From the NCBI RefSeq assembly GCF_006345805.1, contig NC_043019.1:14321360-14385359 (forward strand): a stretch of 64,000 nucleotides of DNA, in the 5' to 3' direction. A program made the position numbers and the translations under genes. This DNA comes from Octopus sinensis. Taxonomy: Eukaryota. Below, piece after piece: positions 38,001-44,000 of the stretch (its first letter is position 1; the number at the start of each line of letters is the position of its first letter). The notes under the pieces were generated by a model. The model was not told the origin of the DNA. It ran no database searches and worked only from the letters and a program-made list of their open reading frames with translations.

Positions 38001-41000
38001 ATTTCATTCTTTTCAGGGTCATGTTGTTTTGACAGATTTTGGTTTATGTAAGGAAGGAATTGAAGGTATGGGAACCACCACTACGTTTTGTGGAACTCCT
38101 GAGGTGAGAAACTGTTTCAACAATTGATGATTTTGCAATCCAAGGTCTTAGAACCTTTAGAAATCCTAATGGTAATACAACTGCCGCCACTGTAGTTGTT
38201 CTGTGGAGCCATTGCTATAGCCTGGTGCAGCAGCTATTCTTAGATGTTACAGTGTGCTACAACCATAGATGCCATGCCCAGGGCTATAATAAAAGGCACT
38301 TACCTAAGGTGCTTATGCAGTAGGACTGAACTGAAAACCATGTGATTAAGAAGTGAACTTCTGAACAACACAGTTATATCTGCACCACACACTCTCTCTC
38401 TCTCCTCTCTCTCTCTCTCTCTATATATATATATATATATATATATATATATATATATATATATATATTCTGCCAAATATATACGTTTTATTTACTTTTT
38501 TGTACATTACTTAATCATCGTTATATGTTTTATCTTATATTTAATCTTTCTATAATATGTAATTTTTCTAAATGGTATAATTTAATTTTCCATTATTGAA
38601 TTGATAAAAGGTGGGGTTTTTTTCTAATTTATATATATATATTATAATTTTTGAAATCTGATTTAGTATTTCTAAATTTAATTTTTCCCTGTAAGTTTGG
38701 AATAATATTCCCTCTTATTATTATTACACATACATATATACATATATATATATATATATATATATATATATATATATATATATATATATATATATATATA
38801 TAATTCTAAGAGAGTTAGAGGCTGTGAATCCAACCAACTAAGGGATAATGTCTATCCAATATACTGCAGTAGAATACCCAATTATTAATACATAAGTGTT
38901 TTCTCATTGCATGGCAATTACTCTACTGAATATAATAAATGGGGGAGGGTAAAAAGTTGTTTTTACCTTTAATTTATACAGCAATAAGAAAATTGGGGGG
39001 GGGGGTCGAGAGGTGGCATTCGTCAACTTTTAGACATTATATTATGTCTATATATTTATTTTTTTTAAATAATCATTTTAACAATATACGTACATGTATA
39101 ACAAATTATGCGTTACGTATATAATATATAAAAATACCAGTAATTATTAAAATATATAACGTAGAGCATAGGAGGCAGAATAGTATCTTACAGCTGTTTC
39201 AGCCAAGAGGTCATAGTACCCCACTTTACTTCCATCCCTTCAGTGAACTGAAGTATATGGTAGATAAGTTTAAGGTACTTGGGTGTGCCTCTGGGCTTCG
39301 TCAGAGAGTTTAGAAAGTTCATAAGGTTAAGTTATAAATATAAATACATGAGTGGCCTGGTGCAGCCTTCGGGCTTCCCAGACCCCAGTTGAACCGTCCA
39401 ACCCATGCTAGCATGGAAAGCGGACGTTAAACGATGATGATGATGATAATATGTATATATATATATACATACACACACATACTGGCATTAGAAAGGGCAT
39501 CCAGCCGTAGAAACCATGCCAAAACAGACGTGGACCCTGAACAACCCTTCAGCTGGTGAGCTTCTGTCAAACTGCCCAACCTATATATAAAGAGAGAGAC
39601 AGATAGTAAAATGTGGTACAGGAGGGCAGCCAAAGAAAACAAGGGAAAATATACGGTGGACATGGACTCTCTCACTCCTCATTAGTTATCAACCAAAAGT
39701 CATCACAGTTTTGACCCACAGAGATACATATACATAGATACACACTCTCACATGCACATATTGATGTTCACAAACCAAATCATGTAACAGAAACTTGTCA
39801 AAGAATTTATACTGAAATTAACTCTTCTACAAATCTCCTTGCTTGTGTTGTCTACTTTAATGTTCTACTCTGCTCCATTTCAGTACCTTGCTCCTGAGGT
39901 CTTGCGGAAACAACCATATGACAGAACTGTTGACTGGTGGTGCTTAGGAGCTGTTCTCTACGAAATGTTGTTTGGATTGGTAAATAACAACCATAATTTA
40001 GAAATATTTTTTTTGTGATCAGTGGATTTATTTCACTGGAATTATTATGTTTACAAGAGCTAGACAAGCATCTGTAGCTAGCAGGCCATGGTACTCCAGA
40101 CTGATGACGAGCAAATACTCAGAAACTAGTCTCTGGTTGCAGGCTTAGCTGGATGGGGGTGCTTGTCTCCCCCTTGTAAACATAAGGACACAGGAAATGT
40201 GTCAAGGCCGACAGGAAGCGTTGATGCTTCCTAGGGCTAAATAGCAGTGGTGTGATTCCCTTTATGGGACTGTCACGTTAAGTTGACAGTATACAACTGC
40301 TCAACCATAATTTATATTCTTGTGTAACTTTGCTGTAAGAGTTCTTGATGGTATTTTTTGTAAGATGCATTCTGAATGTGAGTAGCCATGGAGCTTCTGT
40401 ACAACCAGAGACAGCTTGCTACCCCATTCACCCCCAATGTTCTCTCACACTTTAGCTCCCCCCCCCACCATTTCCTAGCGTCAAGCTGATTCTACCCCCT
40501 AAGGGATTATAGGTCTTGCAAGCTGCATGGCAACCTCATCATCATCGTTTAACGTCCGCTTTCCATGCTGGCATGGGCTGGACGATTTGACTGAGGACTG
40601 GCGAACCAGATGGCTGCACCAGGCTCCAATCTTGATCTGGCAGAGTTTCAACAGCTGGATGCCCTTCCTAATGCCAACCACTCCGAGAGTGTAGTGGGTG
40701 CTTTTTATGTGCCACCGGCACAAGGCCAGTCAGGCAGTACTGGCAGTGACCTCACTCAAACCTTTTTACACATGCCACCGGCACAGGTGCCATTAAGTTC
40801 CTTACTAGTGCCAAAGGTGTGTAAAAAAAGCACTTGGTATGCTCCATGACGTACTTGGAATTAGGAAGGGTAGGAGCTGTAGAAACCATACCACAGCAGT
40901 CACTGAAGCATAGTAAAGTCCTTGAGCACATTGAACCCTGCCAAACTGTCCAACCCATGCCAAAACTTGAAACCAATATTGTAATACTTAATCAGTGAGC

Positions 41001-44000
41001 TGGCCGAAACGTTAGCACACCGGATGAAATGCTTAGTGGTATTTTGTCTGCTGTTACGTTGTGAGTTCAAATTCCGCCAAGGTCAACTTTGCCTTTCATC
41101 CTTTCGGGGTCGATTAAATAACTACCAGTTACGCACTGGGGTCGATATAATCGACTTAATCCGTTTGTCTGTCCTTGTTTGTCCCTTCTGTGTTTAGCCC
41201 CTTGTGGGCAGTAGAGAAATAACTTAATCAGTTTATCTGTTCTTTAACTCCCCTAAAACTGCTTGTTGACCAATGATACAAAATTTTTATTTTAAAGTCA
41301 TCATTATCATCACCATCACCACTTAACATCTGTTGTCCATGCTGGCATGGGTTGGACAGTTTAACCAGGGCTGGTAAGCTGAGGCGCTGCACCAGACTCC
41401 AGTCTGATTAGGCATGGTTTTTACCTATTTCATGTTTGTTTGTTTACCTAACCCCTAAAGCTTCGTTTGTTTACCTGATTGTTTTTCTCTCGTTTACAGC
41501 CACCTTTTTACAGTCGAGACACAGCAGAGATGTACGACAACATTCTTCATCAGCCACTACGGATACGTAACAATATCTCTCAGTCAGCCAGATCTATATT
41601 AGAAGGAGTGAGTTTCAAACCCCTTTTGTTTTAATTTTATTTTACCCTAATATTTTAATAGGCACAAGTGTGTCTGTGTGGTGTGGTAAGAAGGCGGTGA
41701 GCTGGCAGAAACGTTAGCACACCAGACGAAATGCATAGCAGTATTTCATCTGCCGCTACATTCTGAGTTCAAATTCCACTGAGGTCGACTTTGCCTTTCA
41801 TCCTTCACACTGCAGTCTTTAGATTTGTTTCTATGGCAACAGTCCGGATACTTATTGATCAGACCACATATGTTCTGAGTTCAAATTCTACTGAAGTCAA
41901 CTTTGCCTTTCGTCCTTCCTGGATTGAGCATTGAGCACTGGGGTTGATGTACTCAACTTACTCCAACCCTTGAAATTGCTGGCCTTGTGCCAAAATTTGA
42001 AAGCAATATTATTGTTGTTGTTGTCATTAAGGTGGCAAGTTAGCAGAATTGTTTGCACACCAGGCAAAACGTTCTGAGTTCAAATTCTACCGAGGTTGCC
42101 TTTACTTTGCATCCTTTCGGGATCGATAAAATAAATACCAGTTGCATACTGGGGTGGGGTCGATGTAATTACATTGCCGACCCCCTGAAATTGCTGGCCT
42201 TGCGCCAAAATTTAAAACTGATTTTACAAATGCAATAGATAGATTTTCTTTTTATTCTTAATTACAGCAGTCATTTTTTTTTCTTTTTTTCTGCTTTTCA
42301 TTTTTTTTGTATTTGGTTTGCAAGATTCTTTATGTGAATTTGTGTGTTGAAACAAATTTTTGTTGTGTCTGGGGAGAGTCATATTGCTCTAATATATTTA
42401 ACAGTTAAAATAAAATATTTTTAATATATTTTGCAGTTACTTCAAAAAGAGAAAGAAAACAGGCTTGGCGCCAAAAAAGATTTCCAGGAAATCAAAAGCC
42501 AAAATTTTTTTGCTGATATCAAATGGAATGACTTATACTCAAAATGTATAGACCCACCTTATAACCCAAATGTGGTAAGTTGTTTTCTTGTTGCTGTTGC
42601 AAATGTTCACGGATACTTGGGCATGGGCGTGGCTGTGTGGTAAGAAGTTTGCTTCCCCAGCCACATGGTTCCAGGTTCAATCCCAGTGTGGCATTTTAAG
42701 CAAATGTCTTGTACTATAGCCTTGGGCTGAGTAAAACCTTGTGAGTGGGTTTGGTTGACAGAAACTGGGTGGCACATAAACTGGTGACAAGCTGGCAGAA
42801 TCGTTAGCACGCTGGGCGAAATGCTTAGCGGTATTTTGTCTGCCGCTACATTCTGAGTTCAAATTCCGCTGAGGTCGACTTTGCCTTTCATATTTTCGGG
42901 GTCGATTAAATAAGTACCAGTTACGCACTGGGGTTGATATAATCAACTTAATCTGTTTGTCTGTCCTTGTTTGTCCTCTCTGTATTTAGCCCCTTATGGG
43001 TAGTAAAGAAATAGGTATTTCGTTTACAGCTACGTTCTGAGTTCAAATTCCATCTAGGTCGACTTTGCCTTTCATCCTTTCGGGGTCGATTAAATAAGTA
43101 CCAGTTACGCACTGGGGTTGATATAATCAACTTAGTCCGTTTGTCTGTCCTTGTTTGTCCTCTCTGTATTTAGCCCCTTGTGGGTAGTAAAGAAATGCGT
43201 ATTAATTGACATTTTAATCAGAAACCTTTGCTTGATAACCAGTGTTGGTTTGTTTATGTCTTGTAATCTAGCAGTCTGGCAAAAGAGACCAAAAGAATAA
43301 TTACTAGGCTTTAAAAAAATGTCCTGAGGTCAATTTGTTTGACTCAAAACCCTTCAAGGTTGTGCCCCAGCATGGTCACGGTCAAATGACTGAAAGAAAT
43401 GAGAGAAAAAATATACAAAAAAGAATGTTATTTATTTAGATCGTAAACCGGTGACTGCCATACGCCGAAGACAGGCAAATACCTAGAAACTGCAGTCCGT
43501 GCGTATCACTTAGGTTTACGACAGAGGGATGACCTCCCTTTGCAAATTCCATAAGGGCACAGAAAGTGTGCCTAAAGCCAGCTGGAGACGATGATCTCCT
43601 GGGGCTAAAAGATACAGTAACACCCACCCTTAGTGGTTAGCCATATTGAGATGGCTAGTATACTTTCCGTTAATATGTTGTTTGTATATTTTTAAATAGA
43701 GTAACTTAAAGCCTCTTCTTTGAATACAAAAAAATTAATCAATAAATTGTCTTTTATTTCAGAGCGGCCAATTGGATTTGAAGAATTTTGACCCAGAATT
43801 TGTAAAAGAACCAATACCTGGTAAGTCGTGATTCTTTTAATGTTATCTGGGGCTTTCTCCGTCCGGGTTGCGGATCCGTGGAATAAGCTGCCGGACAAGA
43901 TAGTGAAGATGCCGACAACCGCTCGGTTCAAAGTCTCCCTTGACCACAAATGGCCTGAACTCTTTGCATGAACACCACTCTGTACATAACTCCATGTCCC

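Follow-up and report, generated by a model that had tools for sequence, protein, structure and literature searches.

Two introns of an SGK-like kinase gene of Octopus sinensis each host, on the sense strand as the initial annotation had stated, one copy of a hammerhead-headed structured element. The locus raises the question of whether these copies represent a candidate new family, a retrozyme-like mobile RNA, or a domesticated intronic self-cleaving module. Here we report an analysis of both copies and of the 64-kb stretch of genomic DNA that contains them (hereafter, the window), in which, rather than a novel type of RNA, the element looks like a lineage-specific new member of the known hammerhead elements associated with retrozymes and Penelope.

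The homologous stretches occupy positions 40076-40296 (copy A) and 43441-43665 (copy B), and are both solo and 3.4 kb apart. They are identical in 128 of 219 aligned columns (58%), and their Smith-Waterman score of 82.5 compares with 24.7 +/- 3.4 for shuffled sequences (z about 17). Their GC content is 0.44-0.49. The flanks of copy A are unrelated to those of copy B, and the copies are surrounded by ordinary intron rich in repeats, with a 5' splice site 20 nt and a 3' splice site 100 nt away. There is no long open reading frame in the window, and no reverse transcriptase (RT) or GIY-YIG coding remnant was found adjoining either copy.

Despite this strong divergence, both copies consist of a hammerhead head followed by five hairpins, and the ordered architecture described in the initial annotation could be read in each of them item by item. 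The type I hammerhead has the same CAAATA loop and a C.A pair in helix II; it is followed by a G/C-rich hairpin, by CATAAGG with a GACACA/TGTGTC (A) or GGCACA/TGTGCC (B) hairpin, by an RGCC..GGCT helix around GGAAGC/GCTTCC (A) or GGAGA/TCTCC (B), and by a terminal hairpin and GTATAC. The latter motif starts 158 nt (A) or 161 nt (B) after the cleavage site and is the shared 3' limit of the homology. An additional small hairpin that had escaped the earlier description pairs CCC/GGG in copy A and CCAC/GTGG in copy B. A hammerhead-headed, multi-hairpin non-coding RNA common to two diverged copies is thus supported.

The conservation of this structure was evaluated with two alignments. In a hand-made structural alignment of 51 base pairs, 27 pairs are identical, 2 have single-sided and 19 double compensatory changes, 2 are broken (in copy B only), and one is C.A in both copies, while controls with shifted partners gave 0-1 double changes; this alignment leans towards structure, since it was fitted to it. 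In a structure-blind MAFFT alignment, the 27 pairs of the 3' domain include 5 double and 4 single-sided changes, with no doubles in 6 of 6 shifted controls. The RNAalifold energy of the MAFFT alignment is -36.5, compared with -17.7 +/- 3.7 for column shuffles, none of which (0/300) reach it, and the z-score is -5.1 for the plus strand and -3.5 for the minus strand. Wobble pairs occupy four helix positions on the plus strand, where the opposite strand would have C.A mismatches. The earlier proposal, which took the compensated differences in all helices as a sign that the RNA structure was under selection, is supported.

In copy A, the hammerhead domain (40076-40153, plus strand, as are all features below) is closed by an outer helix (CUAGC-A-GGCC / GGCU-UA-GCUGG), followed by an internal loop with GGUAC and by stem I (CCAGA/TCTGG; 40096-40100/40132-40136). 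Its core (40101-40131) consists of CUGAUGA (C3-A9; 40101-40107), helix II with the C.A pair and GAG/CUC, the loop CAAAUA, GAAA(C), the palindromic helix III ACUAGU, and GUC with C17 at 40131, and cleavage is predicted between 40131 and 40132. Every core nucleotide is present, and positions 10.1/11.1 are C.A instead of G-C. In copy B, the outer closing helix of the domain (43441-43521) has 14 bp (UCGUAAACCGGUGA / UCAC-UUA-GGUUUACGA) and is followed by an internal loop and by stem I UACG/CGUG. The core (43465-43497) reads CCGAAGA, in which the conserved U4 is replaced by C and position 7 is free, followed by helix II with C.A and AGG/CCU, the loop CAAAUA, GAAA, and the palindromic helix III ACUGCAGU; at the DNA level, helix II with its CAAATA loop is followed by ACTGCAGT and then by C17 at 43497.

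The hammerhead of both copies is a canonical metazoan type I ribozyme, whose loop 2 (CAAAUA) and loop 1 (GGUAC) match those of Schistosoma Sm1/N79 exactly. Like Sm1 of S. mansoni (the Sm-alpha repeat; N79 derivative in PMC12550524), the copies combine type I topology with a 4-bp helix II and are carried on a short interspersed or tandem repeat, with the loop 1 motif GGUAC(A)UCCAG of Sm1 corresponding to GGUACUCCAG in copy A. Unlike Sm1, they have a different helix II sequence, in which C.A replaces the basal G-C pair, and their natural helix III and repeat body are unrelated to it. The G10.1-C11.1 pair replaced here is strongly conserved in natural hammerheads, and the axolotl HHR_Amex2 (PMC7229834) offers a precedent for a mismatched base of helix II, which is U.U there.

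Helix III is only 1-2 bp long with a palindromic loop, as reported for most animal hammerheads (PMC4209133), and is of the dimer-dependent type. Copy A resembles the axolotl HHR_Amex1 in having one usable pair and the palindromic tetraloop CUAG, and copy B resembles HHR_Amex2, with two pairs and the tetraloop UGCA. The satellite 2 hammerheads of newt and axolotl are inefficient as monomers, and their dimers cleave well; unlike copies A and B, these amphibian units form 330-350-bp tandem arrays with ~10^5 copies, and they have no similarity outside the ribozyme. For the octopus element, the active fold of the monomer is predicted to be 12-13 kcal/mol less stable than an alternative fold, and the dimer to be favoured via the palindrome, so a single unit of either copy is expected to favour an inactive fold.

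Copy A is an insertion. The unit of 301 nt at 40001-40301 (GC 0.44) lies between perfect 13-nt direct repeats, a target site duplication (TSD) whose left copy CAACCATAATTTA (39988-40000) is 8-20 nt inside the intron with its GT donor at 39981, and whose right copy is 100% identical (40302-40314). Shuffled flanks share an identical run of 13 nt or more with a probability of ~3e-4. No reading frame stays open through the insertion, and its fold energy is -118.1 kcal/mol (z -7.6 vs shuffles). The unit length of ~220 nt given in the initial annotation should therefore be corrected to at least 301 nt for the TSD-bounded copy. Copy B lacks any equivalent of the 5'-most 75 nt, which do not code for protein and pair back onto the rest of the element; instead of belonging to the unit, they could have arisen as an artefact of insertion. 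A 26-nt helix between 40045-40070 and 40160-40185 (23/26 Watson-Crick pairs, z 11.6), which also has no counterpart in copy B, would put the hammerhead at the tip of a ~140-nt rod in the predicted fold. It competes with the first hairpin of the 3' domain, P2 (GGGGG/CCCCC; 40155-40173). The remainder of this domain comprises the conserved CAUAAGG and hairpin P3 (GACACA GGAAA UGUGUC; 40182-40203), helix P4a (GGCC/GGCU) around hairpin P4b (GGAAGC/GCUUCC), followed by a conserved AAA (40206-40238), and hairpin P5 (UCCC/GGGA), the terminal hairpin P6 (CUGUCA/UGACAG) and GUAUAC (40257-40294). In copy B, the 3' domain (43522-43663) contains P2 (43522-43542), CAUAAGG with P3 (43550-43572), P4a/P4b (43576-43606), P5 (43624-43636), P6 (43637-43658) and GUAUAC (43658-43663). 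A SINE adjoins copy B and obscures its 5' edge, and a TSD is known only for copy A.

A search with the Rfam hammerhead models, which the initial annotation had proposed as a check, matched neither copy even at E<=10, and no relatives of the element were retrieved from any collection searched. A covariance model of the element (R1) matched only copies A and B in the window. A hammerhead descriptor found four motifs in the window against 0.05 expected; the two further motifs (C and D) lie elsewhere in it and are Penelope-style, and the four include a head-to-head pair of that style.

The earlier suggestion of a retrozyme-like mobile RNA agrees best with these results, while the candidate new family is not supported as a new kind of element, its hammerhead being canonical and its unit fitting published non-LTR retrozymes. 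Metazoan non-LTR retrozymes are 170-400 nt long with GC below 50%, a TSD of >4 bp, highly self-paired RNA and a species-specific non-ribozyme sequence (Cervera and de la Pena 2020, PMC7229834), and they occur in corals, mussels, axolotl and many invertebrates (PMC7229834). The octopus copies share with them the type I hammerhead, a size and GC content within these ranges, the non-coding sequence without LTR, PBS or PPT, the TSD (in copy A), the highly self-paired predicted RNA, the lineage-specific body, and the coexistence with hammerhead-bearing Penelope-like elements. We consider it moderately probable that copies A and B each result from an independent, old, solo insertion of a non-autonomous short retroelement carrying a type I hammerhead, a lineage-specific relative of non-LTR retrozymes and Sm-alpha-like hammerhead repeats. 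Several points stand against this reading. Retrozymes are recognised by tandem arrays, from dimers to 62-mers, that give circles, whereas the window has no tandem arrangement, only two solo copies of unit or sub-unit length; the Rfam models and searched collections yielded no match, positions 10.1/11.1 are C.A in both copies, and only copy A has a TSD and the extra 75 nt.

Under this retrozyme-like reading, source copies would be transcribed as multimers or read-through RNAs, and efficient cleavage would need the pairing of two units, because helix III is limited to 1-2 bp and ends in a palindromic loop. The released unit may be circularised by the host tRNA ligase, and the compact multi-hairpin body would stabilise the RNA and probably expose its 3' hairpin and terminal GUAUAC to a reverse transcriptase acting in trans, most likely that of a Penelope-like element. 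Target-primed reverse transcription may begin at this fixed 3' site and often halt early, so that the copies would share their 3' end, vary at the 5' end and be flanked by TSDs. The helices would covary between the copies because the compensated differences arose in active, selected lineages before each insertion; on the best reading, it was in the mobile lineage, rather than in the SGK gene, that the structure was under selection. Both copies would be passengers at this locus, probably inert as insertions, and their sense orientation in short introns would be tolerated owing to the predicted inactive rod-like fold of single hammerheads and, in copy B, the core substitution. The homology, the conserved structure, the anatomy of the hammerhead, the TSD of copy A, the lack of coding capacity and the further hammerhead repeats of the window are observed directly; the circular RNA, the identity of the partner, the inactivity and the copy number are what we infer.

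Copies A and B could alternatively derive from autonomous Penelope-like retrotransposons as pseudo-LTR fragments, 3' ends left by 5' truncation, which we regard as unlikely. Canonical Penelope-like elements bear hammerheads inside pseudo-LTRs near their 3' end (PMC8557442), most such motifs are single elements from truncated copies (PMC4209133), and the common 3' end and differing 5' ends of A and B, the abundance and large expansion of Penelope-like elements in octopus genomes and the Penelope-style motifs elsewhere in the window agree with this origin. Penelope hammerheads, abundant in this lineage, are also of type I with a palindromic helix III, often in single truncated copies at AT-rich targets (Cervera and de la Pena 2014; Craig et al. 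2021). However, those of metazoans are minimal, with a helix II of 7-8 bp, an ill-defined loop 1 without defined loop-loop contacts, an extra nucleotide after A9, a conserved G10.1-C11.1 and an adjoining RT-endonuclease ORF. Motifs C and D fit this description and copies A and B do not: they have the canonical 4-bp helix II and Sm1-type loops that the literature assigns to retrozymes, no coding remnant lies beside them, and the extra 75 nt of copy A have no coding capacity and pair with the element itself.

It is improbable that the element is a SINE-like retroposon moved by a LINE via a shared 3' stem-loop (P6 and GUAUAC), with the hammerhead as an inherited module and no circular RNA. Dispersed solo copies whose 3' end is fixed and whose 5' end varies, together with a 13-nt TSD, would suit such an origin in a genome whose repeats are dominated by SINEs and LINEs, and Schistosoma Sm-alpha is a SINE-like repeat bearing a hammerhead. 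However, neither copy has a tRNA-like head (ARAGORN) or an A-rich or microsatellite tail after GTATAC, no LINE 3' end within the window shares the terminal domain, and an intact hammerhead upstream of the body would be hard to retain if the linear RNA left by cleavage served as template.

HH9 and HH10 are intronic hammerheads conserved in amniotes and a precedent for host-selected RNAs. They (Rfam RF02275, RF02277) share with copies A and B the sense strand of an intron in a protein-coding gene, but are single-copy, deeply conserved at orthologous sites and built of stable helices, whereas the octopus copies show signs of insertion, have a weak helix III and, in one of them, a mutated core, and are not matched by the Rfam models. 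That the copies are self-cleaving modules tuning SGK pre-mRNA processing, as the domesticated module of the initial annotation, for which we find no support, would be, or sense intron-derived structured RNAs is highly improbable despite their sense orientation in one gene near splice sites and their conserved structure, given that two of two sense orientations have a chance probability of 0.25, that the TSD marks copy A as an insertion into ordinary repeat-rich intron, that copy B carries U4 to C, that helix III is predicted to be too weak for cleavage of the monomer with its disfavoured active fold, and that selection in the mobile lineage explains structure conserved between paralogous copies.

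Copies A (40076-40296) and B (43441-43665), both on the plus strand, are the mutually homologous parts of two hammerhead-headed, multi-hairpin elements that lie in consecutive-but-one introns of the same SGK-like kinase gene. The host introns are short, approximately 1.2-1.5 kb, and the flanking ORF fragments (52, 20, and 13 residues) matched SGK1/SGK2-type kinases with Pkinase and Pkinase_C domains in a protein search. A search with the SGK peptide returned no cephalopod protein, the best identity being 75%, and exact protein look-ups of four ORFs from the window gave no record. 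Local alignment of A with B scored 82.5, compared to 24.7 +/- 3.4 for shuffled sequences, with identical bases in 128 of the 219 aligned columns, and the similarity ends at the 3' side exactly at GTATAC in both copies; the two are truly homologous. The initial annotation had described an ordered series of five structural elements running from the hammerhead to the terminal hairpin, and direct reading of the sequence located every one of them in both copies, together with one further small hairpin, CCC/GGG in A and CCAC/GUGG in B. No third copy was detected in the window by blastn, by an nhmmer profile of A and B, or by an unfiltered covariance model of the 3' domain; this last type of search, which had been proposed at the outset, was run within the window only and recovered A and B alone.

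The differences between the two copies preserve their RNA structure. On a structure-blind MAFFT alignment of these two sequences, the RNAalifold consensus energy was -36.5 kcal/mol, compared to -17.7 +/- 3.7 kcal/mol for column-shuffled alignments, none of which (0 of 300) reached the observed value, and the z-score was -5.1 for the plus strand and -3.5 for the minus strand. Among 27 base pairs of the 3' domain, chosen as being in register in both copies of the MAFFT alignment, five carry double and four carry single-sided changes; when the partners were slid by 1-3 columns, 25-54% of the positions could pair and no double change was seen. A hand-made helix-by-helix correspondence of A and B covers 51 pairs in 11 helices, of which 27 are identical, two are changed on one side, 19 are changed on both sides and still paired, two are broken (both in B), and one is a C.A in both copies, with 0-1 double changes in the slid controls; this count is biased toward structure because the alignment was fitted to it, and it points in the same direction as the unfitted tests. 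All these covariation figures derive from two sequences, without phylogenetic control. On the plus strand, wobble pairs occur at four helix positions and a C.A, which would be a wobble on the opposite strand, at only one, and the plus strand is thus the structured one. Since neutral decay after insertion would have broken the helices, the differences between A and B must have arisen under selection before both insertions. The RNA-level architecture was selected in the lineage that yielded A and B, in agreement with the compensatory changes from which selection on RNA structure had originally been claimed.

The hammerhead core of copy A is complete (CUGAUGA, GAAA, A15.1-U16.1, and C17), and that of copy B reads CCGAAGA, with U4 replaced by C and the substitution at position 7 falling on a freely variable site. 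Accordingly, the type I hammerhead that the initial annotation had assigned to both copies stands for A and is qualified in B by a core substitution that had been overlooked. Both copies contain GAAAC...GUC, and with it G12, A13, A14, the A15.1-U16.1 pair, and a non-G nucleotide at position 17, namely C17 at 40131 in A and at 43497 in B. Helix I is open, as in the type I topology, and comprises five pairs in A and four in B, including two compensatory pairs. Helix II consists of three Watson-Crick pairs, two of which covary, above a C.A that occupies its base in both copies in place of the usual G10.1-C11.1; this C.A and the CAAATA loop were correctly reported as shared. The same loop 2, CAAAUA, is found in Sm1, the Schistosoma mansoni hammerhead of the Sm-alpha repeat, and in its derivative N79, the sequence of which is printed in PMC12550524, and the loop 1 motif of Sm1/N79, GGUAC, is intact in A, while B has a degraded form, GGUGAC. 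Because loop 2 and the GGUAC motif match those of Sm1/N79, the head of A and B is a canonical metazoan hammerhead rather than a new variant class, and the suggestion of a candidate new family is not supported for it.

Helix III counts 2 bp in the hand-made correspondence and is a perfect palindrome in both copies, ACUAGU in A and ACUGCAGU in B. In a monomer it could form just a single pair closed by CUAG in A and two pairs closed by UGCA in B. In most animal type I hammerheads, helix III has 1-2 bp and a palindromic loop of 2-4 nt, and such ribozymes work inefficiently as single units and become active upon pairing of two (PMC4209133). The arrangement of helix III in A and B parallels that of the axolotl hammerheads HHR_Amex1 and HHR_Amex2, the latter of which has a U.U mismatch at the base of helix II where A and B have C.A; HHR_Amex2 cleaves to 22% as a monomer in an hour and efficiently as a dimer (PMC7229834). 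By nearest-neighbour energies, a monomer in its active fold lies 12-13 kcal/mol above a more stable alternative that is predicted to pair the hammerhead core with the cleavage-site strand, and dimers are predicted to be stabilised via the palindrome. The hammerhead of A and B is of the dimer-dependent type.

For genome annotation, the two copies serve as a caution, since the hammerhead models of Rfam overlook both. These models matched nothing in the whole window at the gathering threshold, and nothing at E<=10 in a 4.2-kb segment and in slices of 91 and 96 nt; the same scans gave no other credible match. The Rfam comparison suggested for these elements thus linked neither of them to a hammerhead model, which amounts to a failed automated membership test for the type I hammerhead. 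Our own descriptor, which allows U or C at core position 4 and requires at least 3 bp in helix II, 2 bp in helix III, and 4 bp in helix I, gave four matches in the window, compared to 0.05 per shuffled window.

A perfect 13-nt direct repeat, CAACCATAATTTA, flanks copy A at 39988-40000 and 40302-40314, and thereby delimits an insertion of 301 nt (40001-40301) that starts 20 nt past the intron GT and includes 75 nt upstream of the part homologous to B. Shuffled flanks gave exact matches of this length in 0.03% of cases; across the window such matches arise at a rate of 4%, which is inflated by microsatellites, and CAACCATAATTTA is not a microsatellite. Copy A arrived by insertion. Its 75-nt 5' extension shows no homology to the flanks of B and occurs just once in the window, and alignment of the flanks of B with the region of A likewise revealed no homology. 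Within the insertion, 40045-40070 is complementary to 40160-40185 at 23 of 26 positions, all Watson-Crick (z 11.6), which places the hammerhead at the tip of a rod of approximately 140 nt, and the whole 301-nt unit folds at -118 kcal/mol (z -7.6). The G-rich/C-rich hairpin noted earlier as common to the two copies is present in both, and in this 301-nt fold of A it is replaced by the long helix. The 75-nt part may be either a genuine piece, since lost from B, of a unit measuring 301 nt or more, or an inverted duplication made upon insertion, and the 23 Watson-Crick pairs fit both readings alike. The 5' edge of B adjoins the A-rich tail of a SINE with at least 15 copies in the window, and for this reason its original 5' end cannot be read. 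No TSD of copy B was identifiable in its flanks; ATGTT..TTT repeats were considered and dropped, the longest exact match being 7 nt. Also rejected was an inverted 5'-truncated copy upstream of A, in the style of Penelope, since reverse-complementing the 3' end of the element does not give the left end of the insertion.

The units measure 301 nt in A, as bounded by the TSD, and at least 223 nt in B, with a GC content of 0.44-0.49 and stop codons in all frames of both, so that they are non-coding. A and B end alike on the 3' side and differently on the 5' side, their flanks are unrelated, the TSD of A is long, and neither copy can code for a protein; target-primed reverse transcription of a non-autonomous RNA produces just such a pattern. 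Classical animal type I hammerheads reside in non-LTR retrozymes, which are non-coding, highly self-paired elements of 170-400 nt with low GC content (<50%) and a species-specific sequence, lack LTR, PBS, and PPT, and show TSDs of >4 bp when these are present (PMC7229834); their mobilisation is probably by Penelope-like elements. We lean toward the view that A and B each represent a solo insertion of a hammerhead-bearing, retrozyme-like retroelement. Size, composition, absence of coding capacity, hammerhead type, and, in copy A only, the 13-nt TSD all agree with retrozymes and favour the retrozyme-like mobile RNA that the initial annotation had put forward as one option. However, non-LTR retrozymes form head-to-tail units, each between two hammerheads, and A and B are solo; no head-to-tail tandem array was found at either locus or anywhere else in the window, and because this test fails within the window we do not call them demonstrated retrozymes.

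The main rival, which we consider unlikely, is that autonomous Penelope-like elements, a major and anciently expanded repeat class of octopus genomes, left A and B as 3' ends truncated on the 5' side. Their common 3' end and variable 5' ends would suit such an origin, but the hammerhead is canonical, not minimal: in the ribozyme of Penelope pseudo-LTRs, helix II is 7-8 bp long, A9 is followed by an additional nucleotide, and G10.1-C11.1 is present, whereas A and B have a 4-bp helix II and loops of the Sm1 type. Moreover, the Penelope hammerhead is located in a repeat beside an RT/GIY-YIG ORF, and neither an RT or endonuclease ORF nor a coding remnant was found near A or B. It is less probable again that they represent a LINE-dependent SINE mobilised without a circular stage, given that ARAGORN finds no tRNA in 39500-44200 and that no A-rich or simple-repeat tail follows GTATAC, which speaks against a tRNA-derived SINE.

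We give little credence to two further readings, that A and B are RNA modules retained by the host in the SGK gene or, more mildly, a new subclass of retrozyme. As host modules, they would be hammerhead-headed intronic RNAs of approximately 220 nt, with both copies on the sense strand, whose conditional (dimer- or factor-dependent) cleavage could tune the SGK pre-mRNA or which could yield stable intron-derived RNAs, and the multi-hairpin body of 160 nt that both conserve would represent a novel functional RNA domain. As a subclass, they would spread not in tandem arrays but as dispersed single units, by means of a dedicated 3' recognition domain. Sm1-type ribozymes engineered into a short intron caused no drop in expression, and one placed in a very long intron did (PMC12550524); A and B are most likely irrelevant to the SGK gene itself, and an intronic RNA selected by the host is the least probable of the explanations considered.

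As insertions of a retrozyme-like retroelement, A and B would have originated from source transcripts that are cleaved when two units pair via the palindromic helix III and whose released units are circularised by tRNA ligase, as known systems in the literature suggest. The body of several hairpins, along with the terminal hairpin and GUAUAC, may stabilise the RNA and allow a reverse transcriptase provided in trans to recognise it, this enzyme would start at a fixed 3' site and frequently halt early, and at the SGK locus both copies would be inert passengers. If confirmed genome-wide, these elements would add cephalopods to the animals with canonical type I hammerhead retroelements and would offer an unusually clean natural covariation data set, in which almost all substitutions within the 11 helices are compensated. 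These data cover the non-ribozyme body, for which RNA stability, ligase recognition, and reverse-transcriptase recognition are candidate roles, and natural variants of a model ribozyme are available in the C.A that A and B share at the foot of helix II and in the C found at position 4 of the core.

Our literature search found no paper on hammerhead elements in cephalopods, and the family of A and B has probably not itself been described, though the kind of element is known. Relatives were also sought in sequence collections. A viral-contig scan with a 15-base pattern gave at least 120 matches, all by chance, and the pattern of the P3 hairpin gave none there; a metagenome scan with the hammerhead pattern gave no match, two metagenome matches to the P3 pattern (L121 and L122) were read and rejected as chance, and the one match from the prokaryote genome scan (L124) was a chance match within a bacterial gene. 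K-mer protein searches with the antisense ORF of B and with concatenated frame fragments of A and B returned nothing, and a HMMER search of 1.84 billion representative proteins gave only spurious, repeat-inflated matches, the top one (P0025) being the translation of a 55-bp satellite that bears no resemblance to the element.

Two additional hammerhead-like motifs were observed on the minus strand. The first, at 28687-28644, has the core CCGAUGA with C at position 4, an extra A after A9, a 9-bp helix II, a 4-bp helix I, and the palindrome ACAGCUGU; it lies centrally in a 185-nt element (28575-28758) with near-perfect inverted ends of approximately 40 bp (fold z -11.3) that immediately adjoins a (TA)n tract. 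The second, at 63120-63085, has CUGAAGA and a 6-bp helix II and is located in an almost perfect inverted repeat (63040-63240) with arms of approximately 85 bp (fold -135 kcal/mol, z -21), the opposite arm of which bears a matching CUGAUGA motif on the other strand, head-to-head. Both motifs agree with what has been published on Penelope-type minimal hammerheads and on head-to-head insertions. C in place of U at core position 4 thus occurs twice, at 43465-43471 in B and at 28681-28687 (minus strand), in unrelated motifs; it may reflect decay or else a natural variant that is tolerated, and the coincidence is weak evidence because the descriptor allowed that deviation alone.

Several other repeats populate the window. 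A SINE-like repeat of 180-200 nt with approximately 70-74% identity occurs in both orientations at 43228-43430, where its A-rich tail abuts the 5' edge of B, and at at least 15 other sites, including 16247-16416, 5982-6152, 50989-51149, and 60750-60928. A weak C/D-box snoRNA-like match to the SNORD79 model at 41271-41312 (minus strand), in the intron between the copies, scored 21 bits (E = 6) and is probably due to chance, being far below threshold and AT-rich. A 184-bp repeat forms two-unit tandem duplications at 42830-43203 and 33649-34021 with 90-92% identity, and its core (GGGGTCGATTAAATAAGTACCAGTT...) is found again, in the form of tandem pieces of 32 bp, at 4438-4544 and 34311-34415. Arrays of 63-67-bp units (GGTGCTTTTTACATGCCACCGGCACAG...) at 15156-15660, 35215-35637, 59734-59889, and 61622-61805 generate long spurious ORFs and appear to be an internal repeat of another common element. 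Finally, a 116-bp tandem repeat at 54851-55569, with 6.2 copies of 99% identity, is very young in comparison with the other repeats of the window.
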